Below are positions 20,971 to 64,000 of a stretch of 64,000 nucleotides of DNA, in pieces. The stretch is from Mytilus edulis. Its lineage: Eukaryota. The stretch spans positions 83,762,001 through 83,826,000 of the forward strand of contig NC_092350.1 of NCBI RefSeq assembly GCF_963676685.1, in the 5' to 3' direction. Under the pieces are notes generated by a model. The model was given only the letters and a program-made list of their open reading frames with translations, searched no databases and had not been told where the DNA came from. Positions within the stretch are counted from its first letter, which is position 1, and each line of letters starts with the position of its first letter. The translations under genes were made by a program, and so were the position numbers.

Positions 20971-21102
20971 TTATGATTCTTCACTTTCCTTTAGTTCCTT
21001 CAATTCGATATTTTCACTAGATGTTTCTACTTTAGCACCTATTGCATTATCTCTTTTTGTCATAATAAATTCATAGAATATGGTTGTTGCTATGATACCA
21101 AA
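20971..21102 (-). CDS. Gene B exon 20: end of TM4 and acidic tail
   Basis: atatag|FGIIATTIFYEFIMTKRDNAIGAKVETSSENIELKELKESEES*. Confidence 0.88.
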   Translation of the reverse strand, partial: FGIIATTIFYEFIMTKRDNAIGAKVETSSENIELKELKESEES

Positions 21103-24100
21103 CTATATAAATTAGAATAAAAGAAACAACAGATGATATTGTTTTCATGCTATTTAGAACTATGCTGTAGAATATAGCTGACACGTTTTACTGTGATAAG
21201 AGTAAACACGTTTTATAGGGTTCGTGTTGCTTAGTCTTTAGTTTTTTATGTTGTGCCTTGTGAACTGCTATTTGTCTATTTGTCGTTTTCTGTTTGAGCC
21301 ATGGCATTGTCAGTTTGTTTTCGATCTATGAGTTTGATTGTCCCTCTAGTATTTGTCGCCCCTCTAATGATATTTAGAAAACATGTTCACTAAAAAAGTG
21401 CTTTACTTCATTAAGATGAACCCATATATATGCCAGGACAAACTTTTGTACTCCAAATGCGTGTTTTGTGTTCGAAAGACTCAACATTGTTGCATGATTT
21501 AAGAAATTTAAATGGCGCACAAAAATACGATGATTTAGAGTATGGTGGAGCCATAATTCAAACAGTTGTGCCATATACATTAAAGATAATTCATTCCGTG
21601 GGTAGAAAATCCTTAGTATAATGTTTTTTCTAAACGTATTAGTGGACGATTGTAATCAGAATGATATGAAAAACACAGAATAATTTGTATCTCGACTACT
21701 TGTTTTGTACTATTTAACGTTAGAGCAGACTGCTACATCATTGATATGATATAACCGAAAGAGCCAAGTTAAAAGCATGCATTAATTTTTATTTCTATGT
21801 AGCAACATCAAAGATATATTGAGTATGAAACTACTGTCGTGCTTTCTTTAATATGTTAAAAAGTGGATAAACAGTTTGCCATTTATTCATTCAAATATAA
21901 AAAAAGAAGATGTGGTATGATTGGTAATGAGACAACTATCCACAAAAGACAAAAATGACACAGACATTAAAAACTATAGGTCACCGTACGGCCTTCAACA
22001 ATGAGCAAAGCCCATACCGCAAAGTGAGCTATAAAGGGCCCCGATAAGACAATGTAAAACTATTCAAACGAGAAAACTAACGGCCTTATTTGTGTAAAAA
22101 AAATGAACGAAAAAATAATATGTCACACATAAACAAACGAAAACCACTGAATTACAGGCTCCTGACTTGGGACAGGCACATACATAAATAATGTGGCGGG
22201 GTTAAACATATTAGCAGGATCCCAACCCTCCACCTAACCTGGGACAGTGGTATAACAGTACAACATAAGAACGAATGAATTAAAACATCATTACATCCTG
22301 CATAAAAATCATTTGTATTGTTTGATTTTCTCTAGAAAACATTTTAAGAATAAGTTATCAATTTCACACCGCCATCTTCTATAAGAATTTGTTTACAAAC
22401 ATTACAATGTAAACAACACGTCTTTAGATAATGAATCATTAATTCTCAATATATGAAAATGGTATGTCGTACCTGAGCAGTAATAGCGATTGATATGAAT
22501 ACAAAAAACGGGACACTGTATGATTCCAATCTATTTATTATTGCTGTATCACATCCCTGCAAATAAACATAAGTTTGTCTGTATGTATAAACATATTTAA
22601 GTGCTCATTAGGTTGTATCTGTGAGTTATCGAAAATCACAAAATCAATCATTGAGTATGTACTATCCTGTTAGCGATAACCTTGGGTTCCGGCAGACAAT
22701 CAGCTGCAGTATCGACCCTTTTGATCTAAAGTCATACAACATAACAAGTTTGCTTAATACATTGTTATAGTGCATCAAAAAAGCACTGTTCGTCGGTTCT
22801 CAACTCATTTTTAAATTCAAAACAATTTTAAGGACAACCAGACGCTTATACAACAACAATCCAAACTGTTCTTCAAATATGGCTTATATTTGGCTATAAA
22901 TCATGACACGAATATAAGACCTGCATTGTTAAGGTAGACCATTTATTGAGCTTTTGTGGAAACATTATTAGTAGCTTTAAACGCGCGTCTGGCGTACTAA
23001 ATTTAAATCCTGGTACCTTTGATAACTATTTACACCACTATGTCGGTGCCACTGCTGGTGGACGTTTCGTCCCCAAGGGTATCACCAGCCCAGTAGTCAA
23101 CATTTCGATTTGACATGAATATCAATAATGTGGTCATTTAAATAAATTTCTTGTTAAAAAACTCTGAATTTTTCGAAAAACTAAGGATTTGCTTATTCCA
23201 GGCATAGATTACCTTAGCCGTATTTGGCACAACTTTTTGGAATTTTGGATCCTCAATGGTCTTCAACTTTGTACTTGTTTGGCTTTATAAATATTTTGAT
23301 ATGAGCGTCACTGATGAGTCTTACGAAGACGAAACGCGCGTCTGGCGTACTAAATTATAATCCTGGTACCTTTGATAACTATTTACACCACTGGGTCGGT
23401 GCCACTGCTGGTGGACGTTTCGTCCCCGAGGGTATCACCAGCCCAGTAGTCAACATTTCGATTTGACATGAATATCAATTATGTGGTCATTTAAATAAAT
23501 TTCCTGTCACAAAAATTTGAATTTTTCGAAAAACTAAGGATTTTCTTATACCAGGCATAGATTACCTTAGCCGTGTATGGCACAACTTTTTGGAATTTTG
23601 GATCCTCAATGCTCTTAAACTTTGTACTTGTTTGGCTTTATAAATATTTTGATATGAGCGTTACTGATGAGTCTTATGAAGATTGCTTGAATAATTGATT
23701 GTAAGGGTGTATCGTTTCTTTCAGCACTATTTAATAGTGTCTATAAAGAAAGGAAGCTATAGTTAATGGAGAGAGAACCACCGCCCTTATTTATTTTTTG
23801 TCGGCATAAATGTAGAACATTTACATATTTGAAAAACTTACCTGATCATGGTAATAACCGCTTAAAAGTGAATGTGTACAGTTGAAATCGTATTCACTGC
23901 CATAAGGATACACTTCTGTTTGAGATTTACAACATTGCACAGGAATATATTGGGAGTTTGAATCAGCCTGGTACCTCCAGTTTGATGTTCCGAATAGGGC
24001 GAACACTTCAGTGCTTACACCACAGCATTTGGCCTATGTAAATAAATGATTATTCTGTATACCAGGGCAAACTTTTACTTCATTAATAATATCATACAAT

Positions 24101-27100
24101 TAGTTAAAAATATGTAAATATATCTGACAAATAAACAATCTCATGCATTTAAAAATGTATGATGTCACTATGACGTCATTATTGTGCACCAACATTATAT
24201 TTGTACTATGAATTTGGTAAAATTGTAATGAATTTTGCTTCCAACGACATTTGCTTTGCATGGATCACCATACTTTTGTATTTGGCTAAACATCTGACCC
24301 CTATAGGTCTTTGTATCGGAAATTTACTTGGTTGAAAGGGTGCAGCTAGTGTTTTTCAGAAGATAGTAGACTTAACAAATGCACAAAAAAAGGTAATCAG
24401 GCTAAAACGGATATATGTAAGAATACAATTTGTACATTTATGGATTACCATTATCAATTCAACCATTACATGTACAATCGACTTTTTCTCCTGAAACTCA
24501 TGTTGTTATCACTAAGGCTTGTTACCTCTTTCCTTCTCTGCAGCTTACATCCGTATAAGACTTTCATCAACAAGTCCATTTAAATGAACAACCTACATTT
24601 AGCCATAACAATAACGAACCTTTACAAATAATGTATTCCATGATAGTGATGTTTCTCTGTCGTAGTGTCCAGACGCATGAGAAAACATATAGGTGTAATG
24701 GCTGTTTACGTATTTTATACTGATCCGGTGTTCTATATCTGTGTCTGCCTTTAGAAAAAATAATATTGTTTCTGTTCACATTCAAATAGCATTTGAAGTT
24801 AAATATACTTTTACGATTCGTGTGAAGCAACCTTTTTTTTTGTACCGGTGACATTTTGTAAGCCAAAAAACATCCAATTCTTTTTTCTAATTCCAATGGA
24901 ATATACATACAAACAATAAAAGTTGGGAATCAGTGGGGAAAAAGTTCATCAGATCACACCGGAATTAACTAATTAAATACCCAAAGAAGATGATTTAAAG
25001 CAGTAACTATATATTTTAAGAATCTGTCTAAAACTGATCTGACAAGTATTGTTTAAATATCGTACTGAAGTTCATTTAAACCTTAATTATCAAGCTGTAT
25101 GATTGCAAAGGTAAAATAACAAAAAACTGTATTCCGAGGAAAATCGAAGCGGAAAATCCATTATCAAATGGCAAAATCAAAAGCTCCAACTCATCAGACG
25201 ACTGAATAATTGGTACAGGTATTTCCTTCTGTAGAAAATGATGAATTAAAACTGGTTTTATATCTAGCTAAACGTCTTACCTGTATGACAGTCGCATGAA
25301 TCTTTCATTCACTTATTTGTAGTCTGAACAATAAGTGTATGCTTTATCTTGATAAGAAAAATGATTTGCATTAATAAATGAATTAGACTGCCGGTTTTGC
25401 TTACATAAATATGTAAGTCTTGTGTGATTTTTTTAACTTGAATTCACTTATATGTTTTGAAGTTTATTTTTGACGTTCATCTTCAGTGAACTAGTACACA
25501 TATTTGTAGGTGCCAGATAAGGCAAACTTCCGGGTGCGAGTTTTTTCGCTGCATTTAAGACACATACGTGGCCTTCTGTTGCTCTTCGGTCGGGTAATGG
25601 TATCTATGACATATTTTTCATTACCATATTCAATTAAATTGCATACTATAACTGGTCAACATCATTCAAAGTGATTTACCTGTGACATAAACTCCTTCCA
25701 CAAGCCAATTTGAACTAGATTTACCACTGTCATAAAACACCACAATCCTACATTCTGAATAGTAATAATATTTAGTTCACTTCATTGTTAAATACAATCG
25801 ACTAATTTACACTACTTGGTTGTTTTTTTTCATACACTGATGTTAAGTCCTACCATAAGCGAAAGCTACATAAGTTTTTTTTTTTTTTTCTTTATCATTA
25901 TTAAATTGGATACAATATTTATTGCGCATTTGAACATATATTTCCTGTCAATTTTTTCGTTTCTTTTTATGTTACTATCAAATATTCTTGATTTTGTTTT
26001 AGATGAGAAGGTATCTTGAACATATGAAAAAAAAAGTATGCTCAAAATACTAAGGTCCATAGCAAAATTTAAAAGAGAAAGTTCGAAAACACTGACAACA
26101 TCAAACACTAACAATCATCGAATCAAGTGAAAAGCAACGGTACCATACCTGGCGTGGTAAAGGCAATAGTTGTTTTGTCTTTTGCCTTTAGTAGCGTTAG
26201 TTACATTATCTTTCTAACGTGATTGATACATTTTTTTCAACTTTGAAATGAAAAAAAAAATTAACAATAAGGAAGTAAAGTGCTGTGAGTTCCTGGACCT
26301 GAAATGCATCATTACACATTTCGGCGTTGATTTATAATAAAATAAACAATTTCAAATTAAGGTTCTAAATCCCTATAAAAGGAATAGATGGTGCATTTGC
26401 TAAAAAAATAAATGTACTATCTGTTTATCCATCTCTTTTTCTTGCTTTTTAAAATGCTTACGTCTTTGCATTCATTGTGAAAAAAAATCCAGAAAAGTGT
26501 TCCAAACAAATGAATATGTTCAATTAGTTTGTAATTGATGAACGATTTTGAAGTACCAATAAATGTATTTTTTGAATATTAGAACATAAATAGCATGTGT
26601 GAAGTTCCAAATTCCATTCACTAAATTTGAGTCAACGGGTTTTTTTTTGCGACCTCATACATTTGATATGTTTCCAATAAATCAGCAATAAAATGGTCAT
26701 GCTATGGCAAAAAGAAGACGAAAGAAAACAACAGACAAACAACAATATACATATATATACTGATCAACACGAACACCGCCAAAATCCTGGGACAAATCTT
26801 TTGACCACAAATATCATAATTGAGTTACTTTATCATGAAATCATTTGAGTTATAGTTGACCTTACAGGAATATTTATTGTATATAACCCTAACTGTATTT
26901 AAAAAATCATTCGAAAATTTCGATCATCAAAGATCTCTATGTTAATTTGTTATTGTTTAGTATTTTTATTCGAACGGCACTGATGAGACTTATGCAGACG
27001 AAATGTACGTCTCTCGTACACATTTATGAATGAGTTTATGAATTCATCAGACTGTTGTCTCCCAAATTCACATTTGATATTAACCTTATGCGTTTTGAGT

Positions 27101-30100
27101 ATTATTTTCTTTTAATATTTCTCGAGTGATTTCTTTTTTTCCTGTTTTCTTTTGTTAATTTAGCTATTCTTAAATTATAAACCTTACATATATTTGTACG
27201 TTTCTCGTTTTCACTTACAATAAACATCTGCAGCCTTTTCCATTTAGACGACGCCATAGAACAAACTGTGTATACCAAGAGAACAATCGACGCAGATGAA
27301 AAAGTAACAAGAACAGTGGAAAACATGTTGAGTGCTCTGGTCAGTGTTTGATCTGCTATTATAAATTCTGACAGCAGTGCCTGTATATCTATGTTTCCAA
27401 ACACGGAATCATACCGAACGTATATTGCCAATCCGAGTGTTCCTATATTACATATCTGAAATATTTTGTTTCAGACCATGCATGTATCCTTTTAAAACAA
27501 ATAATTCTCCTTGTGAACATATCTAGTAATGTTTTTGTCTTCTTTATTAAACTATTTGTAATTTGGCTTGTTTCCTCTTGTTTGTCACGGTTTTGTCAGA
27601 TTCTCTTCGACATTTGATTTGGTTTTATATCATCGGCCGTTTTACCAATTAGTCTACTAATATTTATCTTATTTTCAAAACATATCAAACGAAATCTCAT
27701 TGTTACTGTAGTCAAAAGTTTTTTTTCTTTTTTCATTACATACAGCTTCATAAAATTTATCATATCATTTGTATTAACCATTTCTTGAAATCATAATTAG
27801 ACAACTTGTGTTTTGATATAATCAAAAATCAAAATCATCAATAAACTCGGATTTTTATTTTTGATTTAGAAGAAATGAACTTACCAAATGAGTTAACTTA
27901 GATATTTAAAGACAATAACATAATTTATGTATAACTATAATGATAATGATTTACAAAACTTCCGTCCGACTTCTAAACATACGTCTCATACTTTTTAATC
28001 TTTTCTTTACTGATTAATTGTCATCAAAACTAAGATTTACGCACTCACCAGCACAATTCCGTACAAGATGAAATGTAACAAAGATGTTTTGGATCTAAAA
28101 ATGAAAATAGTATGTACTTGAAGTAAGAATGAACTATTGTCCGCACTTTATGCAGAAGCTTTAGTGATTAAGGATTGACAAATTTCAATTCAACTATTTT
28201 TAACAGTTCGTATCTCTTTAAAAATGTTCAATGTGTACGCTGCTTTTTTTCTGGACATTATTTCGATATATATGCATACGGGACATTCGACCAAACAACA
28301 CATTTCTGAAACATAAGTGTCATTAACATGACTTTTTACGAAATCATCTTTTTTTAAATAACATGGTAAATTTGCAAACATTCTCTCCAGTTGCAGCTAT
28401 TTCATTTCAATCTCGAGGTGAAGACTGATGTCTGGTCACCTTTCGGAAGTGTTTTAAAACTGGCATGACAAGAATAAAAAATAGTTATCAAAGGTACCAG
28501 GTTATAATTGAGTACGCAAGACGCGCATTTCGTAAATGATATGATGGACATCAAATAAACAGTTTAAAAAAAAAACTTGTTCCGTTTATAGTATCCAATA
28601 TTAGTTGTAGGGATTTTTACGTATTTAAAGAACGGCCACGTATTTTATTATTTGATGTCTGAAAGTATCTACGATTTTGAATATCATTGTGTTTTTTGTT
28701 ATTTTTCTCTTGTTTTGCCTGTCTTACGTAGTTGGGTATTAGTAACTGTTCTTAAATTCATGTGTCAGCGTTTTGTGTACATTTGAATAATAGACAACTT
28801 TCAAGTTTGATTTTTTTTCTAAAAACTTCAATGAACACCATTTGTGCGTTAAAGATATTTTCACTTCCCGTCCACGTTAAGCGAGTGGATGAAAAAATGT
28901 AATGATGTATTGCACAACTTATTAGACAAATGAAATTCTTATAAACAGCACGGCTGTCAGCCTGTCATTAAGTAAGTGTGATTTAGTACGGAACAAACAC
29001 TTTTTCTTGTTTATCCTGCAAAATGCCTGTCACAAGGACGCTTGCTGAACTTTAATGATGCAAGGATACATGCAGCCCAGTCTATCTGGTAAAAAATATC
29101 ATAAAAGCGCGCATAATTCACGATTTTTTTCCGGTGAAGTACATAACTCGAAAGTGGTCTATTGTATGTATCGCTCGACATAAGGAGTATGGATGTAAAC
29201 AGATGAGCATTCGATAAAAGAAGAACATGAGGAGAAATAAAACTGCTAAAATTATAATTAGTTATACCGAAACTCAAAAGTACTTCATTTCCAGGTGCAA
29301 AATAATTATATGATAGTGAAGGAAGTCGGAAAATTGCAGTTGCTTGGTTTTCACCTGTCATATTGAAAGCAAAATATTAATTTTTTATCGAGGACCTAAA
29401 TGCACAAACAATCGGTAGGACATTTTCAGCATTGCATAATCGGTACTTACTAATAATAATTTGAAATACAGAACGTCGTGCATTCGTTTTTCACTTTTTA
29501 TCAAACAAAAGCACTGCAACTTTCATCTAGGGACATATTTTTCACCTCAACTGTTTAGCCCATTTTTTTATAATATCATTCTGGGATTGCTTGGTAGGTC
29601 ATACACATTCGCCATAGTGTTAATAATGGGTGTTTGTCTTCGTATTCATGTGTTTCCTTTTTGCTCATGTTCTTTTATATAGAGTGACTATATGTCATGT
29701 TGTTTTTATTTATTAACATTGTGGTTTGTTTTTAAGTGAAAAATTTAATAACACAACGCTGACTTTTGTACTAAAATGTTGACATGTTTATCTTAATATA
29801 TGTCTGTTGGTTGTACTCACATATTGCTGTCAATATAATGCAAGTATTTTCAACTGTCATACAAGTTTCGTTCTTAATTAAGAAAAAAGAATGAGTTTTT
29901 GGCAACTGATTTATGTAATTTCACCTTTTCCAGCTATTAATAAAGAATTGCTGTATCCCTCCAAATATTTTGCGTAATATTATTGTCTTTGAGTTAGGTG
30001 CCTGATCATGATCAGCTGGACCTTTAGTTTCATGTATATTCATTGATGTAATCAGTGAATATTCTTTGTTTGCAAATAGGAATCCAATAATCTATAAGTG

Positions 30101-33100
30101 TAAGGTTAGCGGCTATATTTTTGTTAAACAAGTCATGAGATTAATATTTTGAACACGAAATTTGTTATTCATGTAGCATTTATATTATTTTAATAAAATG
30201 TATATCATGAATTTTACGCAAATGTCAGAATAAGCAACAATTTTACTAAACGCAAAACAACAATGTATAACATAACTGTTCCTATGCCGATTACGTACGT
30301 TGTATGATTATTAAAACATAATGTTATGTTGTATGTGTTGACCATGCGTGATAAAATTTAAATATGTTCTATTTCGATATAACTATTTCAATTTCAAAAA
30401 TTCATTTAATTCAGATCTGTGTATCTTTGTCTAATTGTTTGCCTACTACGTTTTACAAAAAATTATTTGACTTTTGGTAACGACAACATGAAATTACTAT
30501 ATTTGACATGTCAATGGCTCTATTTTAAGTGTATTGCAAATAAATGGATAATGAAAATATCTTAGACAAGAAACGCTTTCTTTGTCGAAAATCCCAATTA
30601 TCATAAAAGGAAGTTTGCCGTTCAGCAAAATACAATTGAGAATAAAAATGGTGAAAATGTGAAAGAGACAACAACCCGACCAAAGGGTAGATGCAATTTA
30701 AAAGTGAATGGTTTTGATTGTCATAATGTTTGCGATGGGATGACTTTTTTCGTATGTGATATGTTAAACTTTGTTGTGTGGAGAAGGCGTACATAGAGTC
30801 GACATGTGGCGGAATACACATGTATTTTTCATTTCAAAGAAACATTTCACCAACCTAACAAAATTCTTGCTTCTTTTCGGAGTTTATGCAATTCCAGTAT
30901 TTTTTATAGTAATTTTGTATTTGCAAGCTTTTGAATATGTTTGCTATAGTATAGCAGTTGTCCTATTTTTAAAGGTATTCTAAACAATTTGTGTTTTTTT
31001 ATGTATTTGAACTAATAAGCATGTTTGTTTCTCAATTATTTACTCGTCCTATATGCAAATCACAAAGCAAATTTATAGGGTTTGCGATTGAGATTTCAAT
31101 GTATCTATGCAAGTCTTATTTTACTACCTCAATAATTATTTGCACTGACACTATTCCAAGAAACCAGCCAATAAACATTTTGGTTTTGAAGACTATCTTT
31201 CCAGTGCATGTCTAAAATAAAATAAAAGTATTAAAATCACTTTAAATAACCTTTTATATCTACACAAAAACTGTTTATCTGTATATGCTGTCCATCAATA
31301 TGTTTTAAAAAACATACTCATTTGCAAAAATAGATACCGTCTTATAATTTGTAGACATTATTACGTTGACTTCTTATAATAATCGATTTGTGTGGTTTTC
31401 TATTTATTTCGGCAAGGTTACAGCAATGACTTTCGATGGTAAATGTACATTTTTTTTTTCATTCTTTGAATGTTATGCACAGAAGTACATACATGTATAT
31501 ATATTTAAATGTTCGTAAATTATGAAGTCGTAATTTTCCAATCCTTTCATTGTTTACCAAACATTATAACAAACAAAACAATATGTATTTCTTTGCAGAA
31601 CACAGTTATATTAGTTATATTGAGTTTGAATTACAAATATATCGAATTATGAAATCACAACTAAAAACCATAAGACATACAATAAAAAGGTGTTTTATTT
31701 ATTTTGAATACTGCTGCTGATACACTTAAGTTCCTTAATGTATCATTAGGTCATTAGTACAGGATTTCAGACTAATTACTAACAACAAAGATGCTTCAAA
31801 AAAAGACACACCGAAAGGTTTGTACTAATATTTGCAACACAATGGGTGCCACACGTAGTGCAGGATCTAAAAACCTTGGGGTACAACTGATATAACCACA
31901 ATATTTTTGGGAGGAACGTGTTGTTCAGTCTTTTGTCGTATGTGTAGTGTATTGTGTACTGCTTATCTTTTCGGTTAAGGGACTTAATTTTTCGGCTCTC
32001 CTTTAGACACCATTTGCGAGTATGGTCTTAAGGGTACGACGATAGCCTGTCGGAAAGGGACGATAAATGGCTGAGCCGTGTATAGAGAGAGCCATATCAC
32101 TTGCACGTTAAAGACACCCTTGCAGATTTCTTAAAAAGAGCAGTTTAACGCCGCTACAAGGCAGCACTCGCAACCGCAAAGTGGAAACGGATTAATACAG
32201 GTTGCAATTACTCGTATCTCAATCCCCTATAAATACATATGTTTAAACTATCTGTTCGGTTTTGCAATGGCGTTGTTCGTTTAGTTTTTTTTTTGGCTTT
32301 TTTACTTGTGAGCTTGAATATCCCTACAATATCCTTCGCACATCTTTTAAAGCGTACTCTTCAATGAATTTTCATTAATGAATTTCTTAATTATATAGGC
32401 TCAAAGTAGTATACTTAATATGTTATAGACTGGAAGATCGTTTGAACATAGAGGATTAACGAACTAAGATTTATTAAACTTACGTCTCTTTTGTATCCAC
32501 CACAACTACCAAAATAGTCTAAATTATTTGAACTTGTAGTGTAATACGATCCTGCATCCATTCTACTCTCATGGGCATTTTTACAACAGAACTGGTATTC
32601 GTATATACCACCAAAACTGGTATCAGAAAACCAAAACACTCCACAGCACTGTAACTACATATGTTTACATGTTGATCAGTATTTTTCGTTTATTGGTGTT
32701 GTTCATAAGTGATTATCGTTACTCTTTTTTAAACATATAAGACCGCTGGTTTTTCTGTTCGAATTGTTTTACAATTGTCAATGTTGGACCCTTGTTAGCT
32801 TGATATTTGGTGTGAGCCAATGGCCCGTTTTGAGGGCATTACTGTTAACTATATTTACTTTTTATACATTTTGATTTTGATAGATATTTGACTTATTGAC
32901 ACTCAACCCACATTATCTTATTAATATTGTTTATACGTTCAATATGTTCACGATATTGTCATTAGAACAATTAAAAAATCTCTTCTATTTCACGCATAAT
33001 ACTTGATATAGTTGACGACTTGCAGCGGCTGTCCACTTATTTAATTAGCATATAAATAAATCGTTTTAAATGAAACAGAAGAATTTGTTACAAAGTGCAG

Positions 33101-36100: not shown

Positions 36101-39100
36101 GTTGTCCCCCATTAAAGTCAGTCCTAATCCAAGGAGGCCACCTCCTACCATCTGAAATGTAAACCATAAATTATTGTTATTTGGTTTTACCCTTATAACA
36201 GGAATGATATCTATGTATTACTATCACTGATGCAAGTCAACCTTACTTAGTCTAACTATTAATTTACGAAGTTATAAGAAATCATCACTTTCGAGTTGTT
36301 TTTTTTTTAATTTAGATTAAACATCAGACTTGGTATAATATTTGTAAACATAAATGGCAGAAGGGTGTATTCCACGTATATTGTTATGAATATCATTAAA
36401 TGTATTCGTTTTTTGTTAACAGATTATTTAGTTGTATCTATAAGTAAAATACTCACAATGGAAGTGATCTTCAGTATAACTGATAAAAATGCAGACTTCG
36501 ATCTACAATTGTTTGTTTTCATTTAGTTATATACATGTATTGTTTTTGTTTTCAATAGCGTTCCACAAACTGACAAATATAAACCGACATTTATCTTCAT
36601 TCGATATCCTATACTGTATTAACATTTTTCTAATTTGAAGTTGTGTATTCTAGTTTCAAATTATCAATAATCGTTCGATGCTCTGATATTTTTAAGCAAG
36701 GTTGCAAATATATACAAGCCCAAGTACATTCTTTAGAAAATGTCCATATAAGGTACAAGTTTTGTCTATCGTCGCTTTGAAAATATGAAATAAGAGGATG
36801 TTTTCGAATAACGAACGGGGGCTCATGAGAAAGAGAATGTAACCATGTCCCTCTTTTAACAAACTACTGGTGATTAACCTTATAACTGTCTGGAAATATC
36901 TTTTTTTTATATTTTATTTTCTGTCTCTTCTCATTTACACCTTACAATCAGGTATTTATTTGTCAAACACTTATATATGGTGTCATCATTAAAGTGTTTG
37001 AAATATTCCCATCACTCATTTGTGTTTCTTCCAATGCAATGTGTCGTTGCTATTTGTCAATGTATGGAGCAATTGCTAGTCCTTCATACATAAATTTTTC
37101 CCTTTGAAAAATTATACTGTAGTTCTCACAAAAAATAAGAAGATGCAATATGATTGTCAATTATTCAACTGACCACCTTTGTGGTCATAAAGTGGATGTT
37201 AGCAATTAATAGCCGTACGACCTTCATCATGAAAAAAGCATATCAGATAATCGGTATAAGAAAACTCTTCCATAAAATTATGAATAAAAACAATTGAGAG
37301 TACTAGCGGATTGATTTATGTCTTCACAATTGACGAAAAACAAATATGACCGACAGGAAAACCACAACCAATGTTCCACAGGATCCTGACACTTGGGACA
37401 TGGAAAATTTATTTGCAGAATAAAACATGGCTGAAGACGCTAACATTCACATAACCTGGGGCAGTGATTTAACAGTACAACATAATAACAAACAATCCAA
37501 ATTAGTTGAAAAATGATTAGCTGATCATCTCGATACACAGCAGGGTTCGTATACATCCTTTAAAACAATAAAAGATACAAAGTACATATATAAAAAAAAA
37601 AATGCATCTAAGATGAAAATAGATATCAGTACACATTCAACATCTAAATGTATTTTGAGTGAATAATAAGTAAAGGAAATAGTAGTATACCGCTGTTCAA
37701 TAATGCTAAACTGATTTTTTCTGGAAATCAGTATTTTTGTGAATTTATTTTTTGTTTGTTTTAGAACTGCGTTCATTATTTATACATATTGATTTTTCAA
37801 ATGTTCATCAAAAGTGATTTCCGTGACATTACCTAGCAAATTTACTTGACCATATTGGGAAATAGGTAATTAGTCGGATCTTAACACGTACTTGTGATTT
37901 GTTTAAAATCGGTTTTGATAAATAATAAACGAAGAAATGTCGAAATGTTCAGGACTTAATTAAATCCGTATTTCGGTAAGATGGTGCACGCATACGATTT
38001 TATTGCGTCTTACACTTTGAGAAGCGAATAATCTTTAACTACTTTATTCAAATATTGTGTAAAAACGTTAATTTTGAGCTATGAAAGTCAAGTGGCTCGA
38101 GCATTTTTCTGAGGAAGTTTAACAAAATTGCAAAGAAATATTTTTACAGTGGGCTAGCTTTCATTAGTCTTCACTATCTATAGATTAACAATTTTTGGTT
38201 ATATTTATAATTTAGAATCATCATTGAAGGTGGAGCACGATTGCACAGTTGATTAATTATATTCATGTGCCATTTGTATGCAAGAATGACATTCCGTTGT
38301 ATTATGTGCCAATTCGAAAAAATTATGCGAGTATTGTCTCCCCTAAACAGGTTCATTTTTTTTTAATTAAGTTTAGGTTTCTGATATAATTTTGAATAAT
38401 TATGAACTGTATCAATTCAATATATTTCAGTTTTTGTTATTGGTGTATCAAAAACATTGATGTACGAATATAATTTCATAAATTTGAAACGTTTAAAATG
38501 ATTACATACCAATATAAAGAACCGTTCATCATTCTTCAAAAAGATTATAAATGAAAATCGAATTATATATCTTCCCTTGATGATAGATTGATTGGGAAAT
38601 GAACCAGAGTTATCTAATGGTAATCACAGAGAGGGACTAGCAAGCAATTTTTAATCGTAGCTTATTCAACGTTAAAACAAATTTCCACTATAAACGAATG
38701 TCACTTTATACAAATATAAGGACTTTGTTAGCCAAATCTACAAATTTTATTAGATATTATGATTTTTTATTGCAACAGATTAATATGCTACATTACCTTT
38801 GCCAGTTATCTTTAGCAGACATTAACAGATTTTTGAAGATACCATGCTTTAAAGAAAACAGCAGATAGTACTTGTTGTCTGTACTCCTTGATTTCTTTTC
38901 TTTGAATTCAAGTTTCCTGTACGTATATTCTACAGCAACTATGATGAAACACTGCGAAAACACAAACATATAAAGCTGCGTACATCGTCGTGAAAATATT
39001 GCAGTGGTAAAGTTCATTAATATAAAAAAGAAGATGTGGTATGATTGCCAATGAGACAACTATCTACAAAAGACCAAAATGACACAGACATAAACAACTA

Positions 39101-42100
39101 TAGGTCACCGTAAGCCCATACCGCATAGTCAACAACTTCTGTTGTTTCTATTGTTACTTCAACCTAATCACAACGCTTTATATAAAATTGATCACGTTAT
39201 TAAATATCATTTTTCATAAATTTTGGAATACCGAATTGAAATTTAATATCTGCAAATAAATTGGTAACAACTACAATGTGCTATATATATAGTTCTTAGA
39301 TAAAAGATTAAGATTTTGGAAAGCAATTGAAGAAAGTTAATTTCAGAATACGAATAATATTTTCAATTATCACGTTATACAACATATTTTTTAATTAGAG
39401 TATACTTTATCTTTTCGTTTTCACACAATGGTATTGTACCAGCATACACAGCATCTAGCAATACAACTATGTTAAAATCACTATTTGGAAAAGATTTTTA
39501 GAGAAATTTTGAATTTCACATGTACCCCTATAACATGCCTAGTATAGACTTTTTTAAAGAATCACAAACCCGTCGTACCCTCCTTTGGTATTGACAAATA
39601 AGATTTAAATCTCATGTCTTTATACTAGACCCATGTACCAAAACTTAGAATTAAAATAATGCATTGTTGACAGAGAGATACAAGTCTGTCTCTTTGTAAT
39701 TGTAATAGTTGAATGTAAATGTTGTAATTAAAAAGCAATACTTAAATATCGAAACTACTCCAACAAAATCAAGGTAGGCGCCATGATTGAAGGTGCAGGG
39801 AAAAATAACCTCCGTAGAAAAGAGAATCCCAATGCAAATAAGATTGCTTACAAAATATCTTTATATATTATAAGGAGTTCCCTTTGAAATCACTCAAACA
39901 CAACTTCATACATATAAGCTAAAAACAAAATTGAATGTAACACGATTGAAAAAATGGGATATACATGTATAATTTTCATGGAAATGATACTTACTTATGC
40001 TTATATAAATTCAGACGATGTCAATCACATAGTCTTTTAAATTCTATACAGTACTTCAAAGGATAATTCTAAATTACATTGGATCCCAATTTGCAGTAAA
40101 AACATTTTTTTCAAATGTTTCCGGGCCAAATTTACAAGTTGAATAGTTACATCATTATTGTTATAGTATTGTTTCTACAAATAAACTCATCACATATACC
40201 AGGATTAAATTTTGTATTTAGGCCGAAGGTTCGTTTCGTCTAAAAAATACTCACCAGTGACGCTATATTTTAAAAAGGTTAAAAAGGCCAAATAAAGCAC
40301 GAAGTTGAAGAGCATTTGAGGACCAAAGTTCCTTAAAGTTTTTGCCAAATACAGCTAATTATATTGTCATGTATTCCTGAGGTAGAAAAGCCCTAATTTT
40401 TTTTTAAATCAAAAGTTTTGTAAACAGTTATAAATTTATAAAGTATGACCATACCAATGATGGAGTGTATCAATTGCACAATGATCTTAGTTATTCAACT
40501 ACTGTATCAGTATTCTTTCATACTCAAGTTGTAAGTTCGAATGATGCTAGGTACTAGGATTGTCAGTTATTATCAAGCTGTCAGTCACGAATGGTTCAGT
40601 AGTACGGTATATTTGTTTATGTACTCGCTAATAATATGTTTATTCGGTTATTGATGTTTAGACACCAGACTAGTCGTCTAATATGTAACGTTGTTTTTTG
40701 GATTAAAGTCAGATTGTGACATTTGGACTAACTGTGTATGCACGTGGCAGATGATACATGCATATCAGGAGATGAAAACCCTGAAGAACCTTGTAAATGA
40801 TTATACCATACCTGACTATTCTAAAATAAAGGTACTTAATAACAGGTTTCATCTCTAGTGAAGTCAACCTTTCTTAACCATACCTGACATATGATACACG
40901 TTACAATCAGTCCAAAATATATCTGCAAATAGCTACTGAGCTGCTCATTATAGATTGCAGGACAGAAGTAAATACCGGGCTGTTCTCCGTCACATCCCAG
41001 CTATATAAAAATAAATTTTACTACAATTATAATGCATCAGATACAAAGTTTAACTTTAACTGTCTTCCAACAGATGTTTTGAATGTCATCTTTAGTAAGT
41101 CTTTTTGTTGTTGTTTTTTTTTTTCTGTTAAAAGTTTTGTTGTTCCGTCTTCATGGTCTTGGTACAAAATAGTACACAAAACAAAATATAGAAAACTAAG
41201 CTGAATGATATGAACCTAACTTAAAAAAATTAATGATCGCATATGCTTCATAAGGGTACGGACAACCCGTCGTGTTGCACAGGCTTGTACAAATTTTCAC
41301 TCATATATTTATTTGATAGTCAGTTTTAGTTAACCTCAACACCCGGACACTAGTGATGAGAGTAGGTCTACTTTTTTCAATAATAATTTTCTAAATCTTG
41401 GTGATTTATTGAATCTATGGTGGGATACTAGATTTTCATTTTTCACCATTGCAGTACAAGGAGATCGATTTTAATGTATGTTAGAACAATTAAAATCTTA
41501 CCTTTGACAGAAAATTTGGAAATGTATAGTAAAGATATGTAGATGATATATAACTCGAACCTGCTTCATAAGCGTGTATATAATTCATTAACGTTCCTCT
41601 CAGTTTTGACTTCTACAAATATAGATATAAAAAACAGTTTAACGAAATGGCAGTAATAAACTAGTAATTGGTTTGAAAGAGACCATATATATGCTTCCTA
41701 AAAAAATGTACAACGTAATGTAATGTGAATTAATATGTTTTTTTCTCTATACCTTTGTTCAACCTATTCGGTATAATTGAAATTACCTAATTCGGTAAGA
41801 TTAAGATTTTAACATACATTGTATCATTGAATATGAACCAATCAAATACATACTAGAAAGATGAAGGGGCCTGCAAAAGAAATCATACAGAATGTTATTT
41901 ATAGCTGTCCAAAGCCTGTAAGTCCGTTATTGTCGTTTGTTGGTGTATATCATGTTTGTTTTTCTTTAGTTTTTTTGGTGCATAAATATGGCCGTTAATT
42001 TTCTGTCTTGAAATGATTTACATTTGTTATTTGGGGTGATTTACATCTATCTTAGTTGTAGGTTTTATTTCATTGTTGTATGGCATTTGACAACCTATAC

Positions 42101-45100
42101 TTATAACGTCAATATCATTTTGTCCATGGAGGAAGGTTGTTTCCTTGACGATTATACCACATCTTCTCACACGTATTTATTTATGATGAAGTTGTGTTAG
42201 GTGGAAAGTTGCATTTTACATTAAATCAATGTTTTGGGTTTTTTTCATGGTTTTTATAGCACGATGGAACTTTGTTGTGTATGTCTTCATAGTATTAACA
42301 TAATAGTATCAACACTTACCTCATTGTATAATACAGCAAGGACAACTATGTATATACTGTATATCACAATCATCAATGATCTCAGTAAAACAGTCTGCAA
42401 TATTGAATCTGATAGGTAATACCTAATTTTTTAAGTGGATAATTTTTTCAGATACAAATTCATTGTTATATTATTATTTGCTTCTTTCTTCATTTCTTCC
42501 TAATTTCTGTTGGGTTCAATTTAAAAAATTCCAATAACCTCCGGTCTGTTTATGCACATTGTTTGTGTATAATAGTACGTTATGTACGGGTGGACCTACG
42601 ATACTAAAATGATTGGTTTTTATTAATTGACAATATTGATTGTTATAAAAGTAAATAATTTATAACTCATTCTATGTTCGAATAACTTTCTCGCGTATCG
42701 ACTCCATGGTCCTTCTAATAATTGATACTATCAAACCGTGTATATCTTTAATATTTGTATATCTTTTAGTTGCATTTTCCTGTAAGCGCATATCTAACTT
42801 CAAACTTAAGGTTGTTTTTCTATTTGTTAAATTTGTTAAATCGAAAACGTATATTGATCATGTAAACGAGAAAACCATCTCATATTATTATTGATTTAAC
42901 ATTTGTCAACCTACATCCTGACTTTATACGTTTAGAAATGAAAAAAAAATGTCAAGATCCCCGATTTGTTTATATGACAGATAAAATTGAAATGTATGTA
43001 CATGACTGTGTAAATCTTAAGATGTAAAAAAGAAATAAACAACGTTTTCATTCTAAACAACCAATCGCCATAATCGTTCGTACAAATCTTAACCCACATT
43101 TAACCTACAAATTGATATACCGTACTAAGCAGGGCTTACTATCGCTAACATCTGCTTTCTCCTACCAAAGGCTCCCCATATACCAACTACGCCAGTGAGC
43201 AGTTCCAGCACAAACACTCCAATAAGAGAAAACACAATTGCTTTCACCATTGTGCCAAGTGGCATGCCGGAAATTTCTTGCATATTTACGACTTTAATGA
43301 CGTCATCTTCTAAGATATCGTCACCAACTTTAATGTAGATTCCCATCATTATAAATCCAAAGGAAAAAGCCTAAAACGATTCATCAAACATTGCAAATCT
43401 TGAAATGGTGAACTAAGACACATTTTGATTAATTGATTGTTTAGTTAGTTAACGTTCAGTGCCAAATATTTCATGCATCTTTAGGGCAAGAACAAGTTGA
43501 CAAATGATGCTATAGATAGGTTTTATAAAAGAGGTTATCCGGGATTATGGTCGGGGAAATTTGGACTGCCTCTGGAAATGAGGGTATACATGTATTGGAC
43601 AGGAACAAAAACTGTGCTTTGCAGCAGGCCGCCTACGAAAAAGTTGTTCAAGCGTTCTAAACTTTCAAAGAGCGTGTCACTCTCTTTACAAGAAGCATCG
43701 GGTTTAGTGTCTTTGTTCCGACCAGACGTGGCTAAAAAATTGTACATCCCGAACAACCAAACGGACGCCCCACTTTGGCAAGCGTTTTACTACCGGTCTA
43801 AAAGAATACCAAGTGACCATATTTCTATTCCCAAATCATCCTTAGGGGGAAGACACATTTTTAAAATTGTCAGCGACTATGCATTTCAGCTAGACAACTT
43901 TTTCAATCTACTCCACTCTTATCCACCTTCGGATCCACAAGGCAATGAATTCAATTGGACGCAGTTCTAATTGACTGCGTCCAATCAAAAACGCCTTTAA
44001 GAAATCCCGTGTAAAGGTATAGTTTGTAAATAAAAAATTAACACGCTCCATCTTCTTCTTCTGAATCGGACGAAATTTAGCAACAAGTTTTTTTTTAAGT
44101 TTTCATTCGACTAATTAGAGTTCTTGTGTACGTTACTCGCCTAAATGTTGATATATTAACATGATTAACGTAAATATTAAGTTTTGGTTTCACAAGATTT
44201 GTAAACATTAGACACAACAATTTTTCAAAACTGTGCACTGAAGAGATTCAATTGCAGCAATTAGTGAAGGATGGTGTAACCAGAATCGAAGATGGCTATA
44301 AAGATCAAATGAAAGTTTCACTTTATAAACTTTTATATTCGAGAAAAAAAATCTTGATTAACCAGCATTCTGTTCCAGCACACAGGCATCGAACTATCAG
44401 TCATACATTTTGGCGGTTTTTCCGATTATCGGTAACAACCACAGACTATAATATAACACATTTTCGGCATTGAATGTTCAATTTGCATGAACGAAAAAAA
44501 ACGCTTACGGTACTCTCGGTGATTTAAAGGGAAATCACACTATTTATACTACTAATAATAATTCATTGAAATTTTGCATGTAGACAGATCATACTTATTA
44601 CGATATTTTAGGCTAACAAAATTTTGGGGTTACCGATGTTGTTTTCGAGATATGACGTCATCAAAACTTAAAGAATCGCGTTATACCAAAATATAGAAAT
44701 AGCGCTGTAAATTGCTTTAAAATGGCAAAATTATTGAAAAACGATTTTAAACTGGAATTTCAAATACAGTCAAATGTTATTTGTACCTTAAACACATTTA
44801 ATTGTCTCTGTTTCCTTATTTTTGGAGGCCTTTGGACATTTCCCGCCATTTTTAGTTGCTTTTTATAATAGATTTTTCTTGAAATAAAAAAAATCTACTA
44901 ATGTTTTTCCCTTCAAACTTATGCATAAGTTGCAGCTTCAGGGAAGATTTTAAAAGCATAAATAAAAAATGGGGGTCACCGATGTTTTAAATCCGTTAAA
45001 ACGGAAATAATCTTATCGTCGAATTTTGGCGGGAACTATAAACTTTTCTGTTAACGTTATAGAACGACGTTGCTGGCATAACAGCATTTCTTGCAACGCT

Positions 45101-48100: not shown

Positions 48101-49293
48101 GTAATAATATATTGTTATTTTTTTCCGGAAAATATACGCTGAATCCCACATACCGCATCGCGACGATACGCTGCCAACACCTGGGTTACACTAATGACTG
48201 GACGATTGTCCGGATTGTGACAGGATATTCACCGGAACTTTCTTGTTATTTGATAGATTATTTTAATATTTGAATACCTTAGAGATAAAAGACTATTTTT
48301 AATGAAAATCAAACAAAAATAGTTTAAAAAATATTTTTGAGCAAATAACAATTTACTGGACGGATTTCACTCTATGTACGCTTTACGTATATTGAACTGA
48401 TCGACAAAAAATGATAATATCTCTTTTGATTTACAATATTTTTTCATACCACTAAGAAATCTGCGAGATTAATAGTTATCTTATATGAACATTTAAACTT
48501 TATAGTAAAACAAATTGTTTTTCTACAACAACAAAAATTGACCGGACGTATTTCATATTCGCCAAGTTACGTGTAATTTTTATTATATTGAACTGATCGA
48601 CAAAAAGTTTTAATATTTCTTTTGTTTTACAATATTTTTTCATACAACTACGAAATCTGCGAGATCAATAAATATTTTATTTGAAATTATATAAACTTTA
48701 CAGTAAACTTAAAGGTTTTTTTTAATACAAAAATGAGTTGACTGAGCGGACGGTAACTCATATCAAGACCATATCAAGACCACTATCGGCTATTTGTGTT
48801 GCCATACATTGTGATTGTGTCCATTTCAAATAGCATTTTCATTGTTGCACTTAAATCAAAACGTGGTTTGCTTTCTTCTGCTTGAGTGAAACGTCCCTTC
48901 GAGCGGGCCGCCATTTTAGAAATTAGCAACCACTGCGACGGAATCGAAAACGGCGACGTCATAATACGGCCACGACACTATAGCGGCGCCGAGAGCGATG
49001 TGTATAAACAATAGTGTGATTTCCCTTTAAGGTAACAGCCTGCAGTATTTTTCTTCGATATAGGTTTTGCTTAGTATATCTAATGTAGAAGACTTCTTGT
49101 GGTATAAGATTGTTTGCAATAATTTTAATTTTACATTTGCTTCAAGAAGAATTGAAAAATAATATACCCTAATATATTATTAAATTTATCAACAAATGAC
49201 CTTCAAAATGTATTTGCTTACCTTAGTTATTATGGATGCTATCAGAATAATATTTACTGAAATAGTCAAAGGACCTCTTTTTATAGTAGCCAT
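20971..49293 (-). CDS. Gene B: complete triple-tetraspanin, ~12 TM, 844 aa, 20 coding exons
   Basis: Exons (minus): 49293-49222, 43370-43140, 42394-42320, 41612-41502, 41000-40884, 38951-38797, 36502-36457, 36151-35921, 34520-34446, 33914-33810, 32654-32484, 31211-31128, 30091-29925, 28094-28049, 27455-27219, 25754-25680, 24748-24620, 24033-23842, 22556-22473, 21102-20971. Total 2535 nt, ATG to TAA, no internal stop, all introns GT-AG. Exons 1-7 match gene C and exons 8-20 match gene A. The acceptor of exon 7 is purine-rich, so that junction is the least certain. Confidence 0.85.
21897..22275 (+). repeat. Dispersed repeat family 'aagaagatgtggtatgattgccaatgagacaact...'
   Basis: Longest copy at ~53524-54080 (+). 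Others near 13501, 19931, 20221, 37136 and 39021 (+), and 1878-2180, 32670-32920, 41910-42170, 52870-52955 and 53205-53480 (-). Confidence 0.85.
22473..22556 (-). CDS. Gene B exon 19: module 3 TM4
   Basis: ttgcag|GCDTAIINRLESYSVPFFVFISIAITAQ|gtacga, 84 nt. Confidence 0.92.
22979..23682 (+). mobile_element. Non-LTR retrozyme: tandem dimer of a 353-nt unit with type I hammerhead
   Basis: Two near-identical units. Equivalent GTC cleavage sites at 22989 and 23342 give a period of 353 nt. One complete hammerhead at the junction and half hammerheads at both ends. Confidence 0.88.
23305..23348 (+). ncRNA. Type I hammerhead ribozyme, intact core
   Basis: gcgtca CTGATGA gtctt-acg-aagac GAAA cgcgcg TC^ tggcgt, predicted cleavage after 23342. 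Confidence 0.85.
23842..24033 (-). CDS. Gene B exon 18: module 3 CCG/PxxCC exon
   Basis: acatag|AKCCGVSTEVFALFGTSNWRYQADSNSQYIPVQCCKSQTEVYPYGSEYDFNCTHSLLSGYYHDQ|gtaagt. Confidence 0.93.
24620..24748 (-). CDS. Gene B exon 17: module 3 large-loop helices
   Basis: ctaaag|ADTDIEHRISIKYVNSHYTYMFSHASGHYDRETSLSWNTLFVK|gttcgt. Confidence 0.9.
25680..25754 (-). CDS. Gene B exon 16: module 3 TM3
   Basis: attcag|NVGLWCFMTVVNLVQIGLWKEFMSQ|gtaaat, 75 nt. Confidence 0.92.
27219..27455 (-). CDS. Gene B exon 15: module 3 TM1, small loop, TM2
   Basis: tttcag|ICNIGTLGLAIYVRYDSVFGNIDIQALLSEF...SKWKRLQMFI|gtaagt, 237 nt. Confidence 0.92.
28049..28094 (-). CDS. Gene B exon 14: module 3 TM1 start
   Basis: ttttag|(R)SKTSLLHFILYGIVL|gtgagt, 46 nt. 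Confidence 0.88.
29925..30091 (-). CDS. Gene B exon 13: linker between modules 2 and 3
   Basis: ttatag|IIGFLFANKEYSL...SKTIILRKIFGGIQQFFINSWK(R)|gtgaaa, 167 nt, phase 2. Confidence 0.88.
31128..31211 (-). CDS. Gene B exon 12: module 2 TM4
   Basis: ttttag|TCTGKIVFKTKMFIGWFLGIVSVQIIIE|gtagta, 84 nt. Confidence 0.9.
31977..32248 (+). mobile_element. 5'-truncated SINE with 13-bp TSD
   Basis: TSD tatct(t/g)ttcggtt at 31964-31976 and 32249-32261. Contains cttgcacgttaaaga, a conserved SINE central-domain-like motif. Nested in another repeat. Confidence 0.7.
32484..32654 (-). CDS. Gene B exon 11: module 2 CCG exon
   Basis: atgtag|LQCCGVFWFSDTSFGGIYEYQFCCKNAHESRMDAGSYYTTSSNNLDYFGSCGGYKRD|gtaagt. 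Confidence 0.92.
33810..33914 (-). CDS. Gene B exon 10: module 2 large-loop helices
   Basis: tttcag|IKDDMKDQLYIQQNGYYYNNTQNKLTENWNNMIMK|gtatgt. Confidence 0.92.
34446..34520 (-). CDS. Gene B exon 9: module 2 TM3
   Basis: tttcag|SSVLSTILHVPRLISLIVFSVLIQK|gtacgt, 75 nt. Confidence 0.92.
35255..35814. mobile_element. Degenerate Kolobok-like MITE
   Basis: ttaa|ggggcttgcgggt ... accctcgagcctcc|tcaa: imperfect TIRs with a TTAA-like target. Internal ggtcaccg motifs also occur in the 44528 element. Confidence 0.55.
35921..36151 (-). CDS. Gene B exon 8: module 2 TM1, small loop, TM2
   Basis: tttcag|MVGGGLLGLGLTLMGDNFIYDSSLKYIFYQIQFYNYYFYDILVGLAASSVV...WRKSSAFLIT|gtaggt, 231 nt. Confidence 0.93.
36457..36502 (-). 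CDS. Gene B exon 7: module 2 TM1 start (alternatively extends to an in-frame ATG at 36522)
   Basis: ttgtag|(R)SKSAFLSVILKITSI|gtgagt, 46 nt; homologous to gene C 62056-62101. Confidence 0.82.
38797..38951 (-). CDS. Gene B exon 6: linker between modules 1 and 2
   Basis: tcgcag|CFIIVAVEYTYRKLEFKEKKSRSTDNKYYLLFSLKHGIFKNLLMSAKDNWQ(R)|gtaatg, 155 nt, phase 2. Confidence 0.9.
40884..41000 (-). CDS. Gene B exon 5: module 1 reduced Cys loop and TM4
   Basis: atatag|LGCDGEQPGIYFCPAIYNEQLSSYLQIYFGLIVTCIICQ|gtatgg. Confidence 0.9.
41502..41612 (-). CDS. Gene B exon 4: module 1 large-loop helices
   Basis: ttgtag|KSKLRGTLMNYIHAYEAGSSYISSTYLYYTFPNFLSK|gtaaga. Confidence 0.85.
42320..42394 (-). CDS. Gene B exon 3: module 1 TM3
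   Basis: ttgcag|TVLLRSLMIVIYSIYIVVLAVLYNE|gtaagt, 75 nt. Confidence 0.92.
43140..43370 (-). CDS. Gene B exon 2: module 1 TM1, small loop, TM2
   Basis: ttttag|AFSFGFIMMGIYIKVGDDILEDDVIKVV...GIWGAFGRRKQMLAI|gtaagc, 231 nt. Confidence 0.93.
43427..43849 (-). mobile_element. SINE-like retroposon with 12-bp TSD
   Basis: aagacacatttt at 43415-43426 and 43850-43861. Minus-strand 3' tail ...atgcatgaaatatttggcactgaacgttaac..aacaatcaattaatc. Confidence 0.75.
46370..46760 (+). mobile_element. Helentron/DINE-1-like non-autonomous element fragment
   Basis: Internal repeat ataaacaagcttc.gtccaagtttggta.aaatccagaatag present twice; terminal hairpin ttcgac-taaa-gtcgaa followed by ggctcgacaaaaa. Confidence 0.55.
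48350..48730. repeat. Tandem duplication, ~195-bp period
   Basis: tatattgaactgatcgacaaaaa...tttacaatattttttcatac..cta.gaaatctgcgagat at ~48388 and ~48584. Confidence 0.8.
49222..49293 (-). CDS. Gene B exon 1 (first coding)
   Basis: aaaATG MATIKRGPLTISVNIILIASIITK|gtaagc; matches gene C MVKVERGRITISANIILTALVITR. Confidence 0.88.
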
Positions 49294-54974: not shown

Positions 54975-55046
54975 ATGGTTAAAGTGGAAAGAGGTCGTAT
55001 CACTATTTCAGCTAATATTATTTTGACAGCTTTAGTGATTACAAGG
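54975..55046 (+). CDS. Gene C exon 1 (first coding)
   Basis: aaaATG MVKVERGRITISANIILTALVITR|gtaagt, 72 nt. Confidence 0.88.
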
Positions 55047-63605: not shown

Positions 63606-64000
63606 GTGACGGTTGCGAATGTTAAAAAAATGTGTACACGTCTCAGGTGCACCTTCTCAAAGTTTGATACAGGATAAATGGATAAATGTATTTTATTTAA
63701 GTGTCACGTATTGATGATACAGTTGTGAAATTACCCATAATTTATATGATCCCTCATCTGCTGTGGTTTTTTTTTTTTATTATTTTGCGATCGTTCTGTC
63801 TTTTGTCGTATTCCGTTTATGGCATTATAATTATGTCTGTTCATATACATGTGGCGGACTTGTGCGTTTGACGGTTTATCTTTATTTTTTATTCAGTCTA
63901 TTCAAGAGTCTTTTATAACTATTTTTATACCAAAAGCCTTCGTTTAAAAATAGAGTTTTAAATATTATTGCAGAAGATTGCTTTAATTGTCTTAATTGTG

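Follow-up and report, generated by a model that had tools for sequence, protein, structure and literature searches.

A 64,000-nucleotide stretch of the Mytilus edulis genome (hereafter the window; NC_092350.1, positions 83,762,001 to 83,826,000) contains on its minus strand, from 49293 to 20971, a gene designated gene B in which three diverged tetraspanin units are joined at the gene level. Only unit 1 retains an ATG exon; units 2 and 3 open with a 46-nt internal exon preceded by an AG acceptor, and units 1 and 2 each close with an exon whose phase-2 GT donor stands one base before an unspliced reading would stop. That gene B is a single gene for three non-identical tetraspanin modules, covalently linked in a fixed order, is well supported, because the gene structure is kept in seven paralogs, collinear proteins are predicted in five Mytilus species, and one spliced RNA-like contig extends over the junction between modules 1 and 2 (the 1-2 junction). 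We therefore consider gene B likely to be a real feature and a real fused gene. It is also probable that the family to which it belongs is restricted to Mytilus, comprises about seven tandem paralogs and one more distant relative, and places three different modules in each polypeptide, probably with shorter products alongside the full-length one.

Gene structure

Gene B was rebuilt exon by exon from the sequence of the window, AT-rich eukaryotic DNA with a GC content of ~0.31; boundaries were set by hand and the exons joined by a local script. Positions are window coordinates unless contig 7, on which the window lies, is named. The 20 spliced exons (E1-E20) amount to 2535 nt, or 844 codons plus TAA, with zero internal stops in a local frame check, and every intron is of the GT-AG type with a pyrimidine-rich acceptor. 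One exon cassette occurs three times, opening with a 72-nt ATG exon in module 1 and a 46-nt exon in modules 2 and 3. A second exon of 231, 231 and 237 nt, respectively, encodes transmembrane segment 1 (TM1), the small loop and TM2, and is followed by a 75-nt TM3 exon and by loop exons; the cassette closes with a TM4 divided over two exons, the latter of which bears a cytoplasmic linker or tail. An initial annotation of this DNA had described one open frame of 20 GT-AG exons with a thrice-repeated cassette, and the rebuilt gene bears this out. The junction coordinates given there, 38797/36502 and 29925/28094, are exact, each being a phase-2 donor followed by a 46-nt exon. The exons, together with one in-frame ATG outside them, are as follows.

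Exon 1, 49222..49293, minus strand: 72 nt; ATG, N-terminal tail and TM1 start of module 1; the sole ATG-type first exon of the unit.
Exon 2, 43140..43370, minus strand: 231 nt; remaining TM1, small loop and TM2 of module 1.
Exon 3, 42320..42394, minus strand: 75 nt; TM3 of module 1.
Exon 4, 41502..41612, minus strand: 111 nt; start of the short large loop of module 1.
Exon 5, 40884..41000, minus strand: 117 nt; end of the module 1 loop, with two Cys and without CCG, and TM4 first half; an RNA-like contig of set X1 covers it.
Exon 6, 38797..38951, minus strand: 155 nt; end of module 1 TM4 and the 43-aa cytoplasmic linker 1; ends W-Q-AG/GT (slash, exon boundary) in phase 2; TAA at 38795-38793 if unspliced.
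Exon 7, 36457..36502, minus strand: 46 nt; completes the Arg codon, then S-K and TM1 start of module 2; joint 36457/36151 in sets X1 and X2.
Exon 8, 35921..36151, minus strand: 231 nt; TM1 end, small loop and TM2 of module 2; RNA-like joint with exon 7.
Exon 9, 34446..34520, minus strand: 75 nt; TM3 of module 2.
Exon 10, 33810..33914, minus strand: 105 nt; opening part of the module 2 large loop.
Exon 11, 32484..32654, minus strand: 171 nt; module 2 large loop with CCG, CC and C.
Exon 12, 31128..31211, minus strand: 84 nt; final loop Cys and first half of TM4, module 2.
Exon 13, 29925..30091, minus strand: 167 nt; end of module 2 TM4 and the 50-aa cytoplasmic linker 2; ends W-K-AG/GT in phase 2; TGA at 29923-29921 if unspliced.
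Exon 14, 28049..28094, minus strand: 46 nt; completes Arg, then S-K and TM1 start of module 3; the upstream stop is reached without an in-frame ATG.
Exon 15, 27219..27455, minus strand: 237 nt; TM1 end, small loop and TM2 of module 3.
Exon 16, 25680..25754, minus strand: 75 nt; TM3 of module 3.
Exon 17, 24620..24748, minus strand: 129 nt; opening part of the module 3 large loop.
Exon 18, 23842..24033, minus strand: 192 nt; module 3 large loop with CCG, PVQCC and C.
Exon 19, 22473..22556, minus strand: 84 nt; G-C ahead of TM4 and first half of TM4, module 3.
Exon 20, 20971..21102, minus strand: 132 nt including TAA; end of TM4 and 34-aa acidic tail of module 3.
In-frame ATG, 36520..36522, minus strand: 6 codons upstream of exon 7, immediately after a stop; possible alternative start for a product of modules 2+3.

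Junctions between the modules

The junctions were weighed against the alternative that gene B is three separate adjacent tetraspanin genes misjoined by predictors, the spanning RNA being rare read-through between neighbours. In favour of separate genes, tandem tetraspanin genes are common in invertebrates, exons 6 and 13 stop at once when left unspliced (W-Q-R-TAA, from AG/GTAA, and W-K-R-TGA, from AG/GTGA), an ATG is available ahead of exon 7, and at least one RefSeq model terminates after module 1. The stop falls straight after the donor, however, because a GTAA or GTGA donor in phase 2 itself reads as a stop. In the exon-6-like exon of paralog C and the exon-13-like exon of paralog A, the AG/GT is kept in place with no stop for 37 and 43 nt, respectively, and it is therefore the donor that is conserved, not the stop.

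Other features of the junctions point the same way. Similarity among the paralogs begins exactly at the AG preceding the 46-nt exons and stops exactly at the donors, at all junctions. Linker exons end in TGG-NNN-AG/GT (W-x-AG/GT), in phase 2, at 14/14 junctions, and a 46-nt exon encoding R-S-K/R and a hydrophobic stretch, with AG before it and GT after it, stands at 13 of the 14. The 2-3 junction exon of paralog C was not found with the strict 46-nt AG...GT pattern and may be altered or decaying. An upstream in-frame ATG accompanies 6/13 junction exons (4.0 expected), overall about the chance level, and only 1/6 of those at the 2-3 junction; the remaining 7/13, exon 14 among them, have none. 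Whereas genes that are merely read through would each carry their own start exon and their own stop, each of the seven three-module units has a single ATG-type E1 exon and the stops at the donors are not conserved. Spacing is 8-12 kb inside units versus 17-30 kb between them, the genomic match of the RNA-like contig described below ends exactly at the exon 6 donor while the contig goes on, and both junctions are present in RefSeq models of two species. Taken together, these observations leave three misjoined neighbours a very improbable explanation, and a single fused gene is preferred. The initial annotation had read in the sequence that gene C repeats the 1-2 junction and gene A the 2-3 junction, and had judged chance adjacency unlikely; both repeats are present, and the pattern recurs in seven paralogous units of the chromosome, far beyond chance.

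A tandem cluster of three-module paralogs

When a profile of the TM1-loop-TM2 exon was searched against the 1.37-Gb genome, all 22 matches fell inside ~340 kb of contig 7, at the two spacings given above. Exon-by-exon tblastn on the fetched region resolved seven collinear units, A to G, each with the E1-E20 order and one E1 (ATG) exon. Automated models of A and F are, like B, intact three-module open reading frames (ORFs), the other four units being only partly resolved by script. In a tree of TM1-to-TM3 segments, modules cluster by position rather than by unit (support 100/100 and 98/100 for modules 1 and 3, respectively), and the three-module arrangement is therefore older than the sevenfold duplication. 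Mean identity to B among the paralogs is 64% in linker 1, one of the best-conserved parts, and 41% in linker 2, the least conserved.

Paralog A occupies window positions 1-17846 on the plus strand and begins upstream, at 83749064 on contig 7, so that its module 1 lies just outside the window; its automated 20-exon model is an 860-aa ORF. Paralog C, also on the plus strand, spans 54975-64000 and extends to ~83857527 on contig 7, with ~18 kb between its exon-7-like exon (window position 62056) and its exon-8-like exon. Units D-G are four three-module units on the minus strand at contig 7 83862474-83994279, spaced 17-30 kb apart, and unit G corresponds to M. galloprovincialis LOC143083943 (997 aa). 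Another relative, more distant, is located 90 kb upstream (contig 7 83656314-83663765), with module-1-like, linker-1-like and module-2-like exons; it matches M. edulis CAG2209053.1, a protein of 1074 aa with further repeated membrane segments and a different multi-module architecture.

Related proteins in public databases

The same TM1-loop-TM2 profile, searched against 1.84 billion representative proteins, gave 34 matches. Those that were looked up all belong to Mytilus species, namely M. galloprovincialis, M. edulis, M. californianus, M. trossulus and M. coruscus. With a full-length family member as the query, 25 proteins were retrieved, likewise all from Mytilus. Both W-x-R-S-K/R junctions occur in each of the RefSeq entries XP_076116466.1 (997 aa), LOC127706050 (995 aa), LOC127706052 (933 aa) and LOC143083940 (942 aa), and local BLAST aligned the gene B model with these Mytilus proteins collinearly over residues 1-844 at 48-61% identity.

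The sole near-identical public entry for gene B is M. edulis CAG2222687.1 (P0008; 375 aa). Compared with window 20971-33914, it starts inside exon 10, joins exon 13 to exon 15 out of frame, and skips exons 14, 17 and 19; this model of the likely ortholog of gene B thus looks like a mis-spliced annotation. The short proteins in the databases are mostly single-exon ORFs of unspliced DNA and are uninformative on splicing, and a protein search with the open frame around exon 6 returned no matches, a result of little weight given the length filter.

The initial annotation had also put this forward as a novel protein. Our search of the full-text literature found no description of natural multi-tetraspanin proteins, although many subscription papers fall outside its coverage and an earlier description is possible; full-length three-module models, on the other hand, are already in RefSeq and ENA, where they are named 'uncharacterized protein' or auto-named TSPAN9. 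What is new is the domain architecture, three modules in one chain, inside the known tetraspanin superfamily.

RNA evidence and probable shorter products

Three RNA-like contig sets (X1, X2 and X6) and a raw RNA-seq run (X24) were aligned to positions 35900-41650. The contig sets were judged RNA-like on the grounds that exons and repeats are covered and unique intron stretches have zero depth. The joint between exons 7 and 8 (36457/36151; CT..AC on the plus strand) is present in both X1 and X2. A 303-nt contig of X1 matches exon 6 (38797-38951) exactly and carries 108 extra letters on one side and 40 on the other. Bin depths of 0.12 and 1.46 around exon 5 and of 2.35 around exon 7 equal the contribution of these extra letters at a depth of 2.8 on 40884-40991 and 36463-36502, and the contig is therefore read as E5-E6-E7, spliced over the 1-2 junction. 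On this reading, gene B is transcribed across at least this first junction. All depths are low, and expression in these samples is therefore weak.

Several points weigh against the fused gene as read here. The E6-E7 joint was inferred from piece ends and depths rather than read directly, at a contig depth of ~3. RNA over 38797/36502, to which the initial annotation had looked for confirmation, fits the splice, and other contigs pass through the exon 7 acceptor. The latter are two contigs, 36463-36624 in X1 and, continuing into exon 8, 36560-36457 in X2, whose coverage ends by ~36625-36667; they represent either pre-mRNA or internal-start transcripts able to use the ATG at 36522, and some transcripts may thus start inside the gene or stay unspliced. 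Of the two junctions, the aligned interval covers the 1-2 junction only, and the raw run X24 has zero reads on exons within that interval. Upstream ATGs occur at 5/7 of the 1-2 junction exons, compared with 2.1 expected (P ~0.02, for a subgroup picked post hoc). M. californianus RefSeq contains one model with module 1 alone (255 aa, ending N-W-K-R-stop) and another with modules 2+3 (651 aa), and public gene models are in any case predictions that possibly share one common error.

From such points it could be argued that a full-length message exists, yet the main products are shorter, the triple tetraspanin being one isoform among several and its stoichiometry not fixed. Module 1 alone would arise from an intron retained after exon 6 or from early polyadenylation, ending W-Q-R-stop, and a product of modules 2+3 would be transcribed from an internal promoter and begin at the ATG at 36522, which follows directly on a stop. 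Consistent with this are the read-through contigs upstream of exon 7, one of them spliced to exon 8, the two paths leading into exon 7, whose depths of 2.8 and 2.0 together come to about the 4.52 of the exon 7-8 contig, the excess of upstream ATGs at the 1-2 junctions, and the two M. californianus models. However, the distances of those ATGs from the junction exons are not conserved (6, 7, 17, 18 and 17/29 codons), paralogs A and F have none, and the stop after the donor is what any phase-2 GTAA or GTGA gives and is absent from paralogs A and C. The read-through contigs, moreover, are possibly pre-mRNA, X2 also having depth just outside exon 5, and the depths concerned are very low. That shorter forms are the main products thus appears doubtful, and we favor a full-length three-module product, beside which a form with only module 1 and an internally started form with modules 2+3 probably exist. 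Of the genetically hard-wired hetero-trimer envisaged initially, the three linked modules and their fixed order stand; a fixed stoichiometry possibly does not hold for every transcript, given the models of module 1 only and of modules 2+3.

Other RNA-like signals were also observed. A segment upstream of exon 7 (36640-36851), unique in the fetched cluster region, is matched by a 213-nt X6 contig at a depth of 3.3, while X6 is empty on exon 7; this contig could be intronic RNA or a separate transcript. Intronic repeats at 37436-38779 and 40124-40507 are covered deeply, with many mismatches, in every RNA-like run as well as the raw RNA run, a pattern suggestive of transposon copies transcribed elsewhere in the genome. 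An interspersed repeat of ~100 nt at 38972-39163, with copies at 2094-2203, 13499-13593, 19924-19997, 21891-21998, 52872-52960 and 53509-53610, reaches 24,000-209,000 in summed depth across the RNA-like contig sets, where numerous joints are rearranged, and had no match in Rfam and tRNA scans.

Tetraspanin character of the modules

By Kyte-Doolittle hydropathy, the gene B protein has 12 hydrophobic segments, four per module, and 12 long helices appear in AlphaFold2 models of homologs, in agreement with the 12 membrane passes expected initially. The initial annotation had also listed W...CCG, CC/PVQCC and the Cys before TM4 for modules 2 and 3, and six-Cys large loops are indeed found in both (CCG, CC in module 2 or PVQCC in module 3, C, and a last Cys 11 residues ahead of TM4). 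In module 1 the large loop is 61 residues long, with two Cys, one of them at the pre-TM4 position, and no CCG. Typical of tetraspanins are polar residues within the helices, Asn in TM1 and Glu or Gln in TM3/TM4; in gene B, modules 1 and 3 have the TM1 Asn, and all three modules have Glu or Gln close to the ends of TM3 and within TM4. Modules 2 and 3 thus each pass the sequence tests for a tetraspanin, module 1 fails those for CCG and Cys number, and instead of a single four-helix domain in ~200-350 aa the protein has three domains in 844 aa.

For family and fold tools, public homologs stood in for the 844-aa gene B model, which was itself used in local scripts only. Single exons of the window score weakly against PF00335 (19.1 and 14.8 bits; gathering cut-off 32.1). 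The three PF00335 matches that had been predicted were seen in the stand-in XP_076116466.1, where three stretches match with an E value of 4e-25; the collinear homolog P0035 scores 89.2 bits over three stretches, and P0036, which contains module 1 and part of module 2, scores 31.8 bits, slightly below the cut-off.

A sequence search of solved structures gave weak matches to CD53 and UPK1B only. AlphaFold2 predicted long helices at low confidence for P0035 (11 sequences; predicted local distance difference test [pLDDT] 40, predicted template modeling score [pTM] 0.29) and P0045 (31 sequences; pLDDT 54.5, pTM 0.41), and neither model has confident contacts between modules. The packing of the modules, for which structure prediction had been suggested, is unreadable from models of this quality. 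In Foldseek, run with the homolog model of pLDDT 54.5, every row at a probability of 0.9-1.0 is a tetraspanin, with target TM-scores of at most 0.65 and weak E values of 2e-3 to 0.5; the top matches are PRPH2/ROM1, CD81, uroplakins Ia/Ib, CD9, CD53 and Tspan15.

Proposed topology and role

Because each module has an even number of helices, all three large loops would face outward, and both linkers (43-50 aa) and the tail would be cytoplasmic; this would place both ends of each module on the cytoplasmic side. By analogy with other tetraspanins, the protein would most likely act as a lateral organizer of membrane partner proteins, differing from them in being a pre-assembled hetero-trimer of fixed order. 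Module 1 may be mainly structural, since its loop is reduced (two Cys, no CCG) and linker 1 is well conserved. Modules 2 and 3 may be the partner-binding faces, since their canonical six-Cys loops diverge faster between paralogs. From the lineage-specific tandem expansion one might speculate on a role in immune or gamete recognition. A more far-reaching proposal is a covalent hetero-trimer representing a class of 12-helix scaffold unseen in model animals. Internal starts and early ends would then adjust its composition, and its seven fast-diverging copies would serve self/non-self or gamete recognition; we think this unlikely, if conceivable.

Alternatively, the 12 helices could assemble into a single bundle that resembles a channel or transporter and functions differently from tetraspanins. 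The helix count alone suggests it, along with Foldseek rows to long channel proteins (probability 0.02-0.14, TM-score <0.1). Each module nevertheless retains the tetraspanin gene structure and loop motifs, the high-probability fold matches are all tetraspanins, and the AlphaFold2 models contain no confident contacts between modules. A channel is accordingly a most implausible reading compared with three linked tetraspanins. Where the initial annotation had spoken of a scaffold, receptor or channel-like bundle, the first two persist as conjecture, and we found no evidence toward the third.

Comparison with known systems

Tetraspanins are thought to act through loose, non-covalent association with one another, the rules of which are hard to study. 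A natural chain that fixes three different tetraspanin modules in order would be a ready-made model of their side-by-side packing and would show which faces are free for partners. The gene is also a clear example of domain-architecture change through the fusion of tandem genes, and in mussels it draws attention to a surface-protein family that is lineage-specific and expanded in tandem, and in which gene models are sometimes wrong (split, truncated or mis-spliced).

Canonical tetraspanins such as CD9, CD63, CD81, uroplakin 1 and peripherin-2 are single four-TM proteins of ~200-350 aa that associate non-covalently. Gene B resembles members of PF00335 (CD9, CD63, CD81, CD53 and the TSPAN family) in the four helices, small and large outer loops and 75-nt TM3 exon of each module, in the CCG and further loop Cys of modules 2 and 3, one of which lies ~11 residues before TM4, and in the polar residues of TM1, TM3 and TM4. 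It differs in carrying three modules per 844-aa chain rather than one in 200-350 aa, in a module 1 with two loop Cys and no CCG, and in having long cytoplasmic linkers in place of free tails. The best fold matches, at weak E values, are peripherin-2/ROM1 and uroplakins Ia/Ib (7zw1 and 8jj5), which likewise bring different tetraspanins together, as hetero-oligomers that act as structural membrane units. Their subunits, however, come from separate genes and are held non-covalently or by disulfides, whereas in gene B order and ratio are set by the peptide chain; the comparison does not extend to a role in forming curvature or plaques.

Among the Mytilus proteins, XP_076116466.1 (M. galloprovincialis), LOC127706050 (M. 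californianus) and CAG2224584.1 (M. edulis, 871 aa, auto-named TSPAN9) share the module order and the two W-x-R-S-K/R junctions with gene B and are collinear with it over residues 1-844 at 48-61% identity. Such proteins are paralogs or orthologs of other units in the cluster, and a long tail rich in Lys and Glu, absent from gene B, is present in many of them. Conjoined (read-through) genes, like gene B, combine several gene-like units in one message and may also give shorter products. Unlike them, gene B has no conserved start-codon exon in units 2 and 3, and its phase-matched junction intron is kept in seven paralogs; the three tetraspanin modules are therefore joined by a fixed fusion rather than by occasional read-through.

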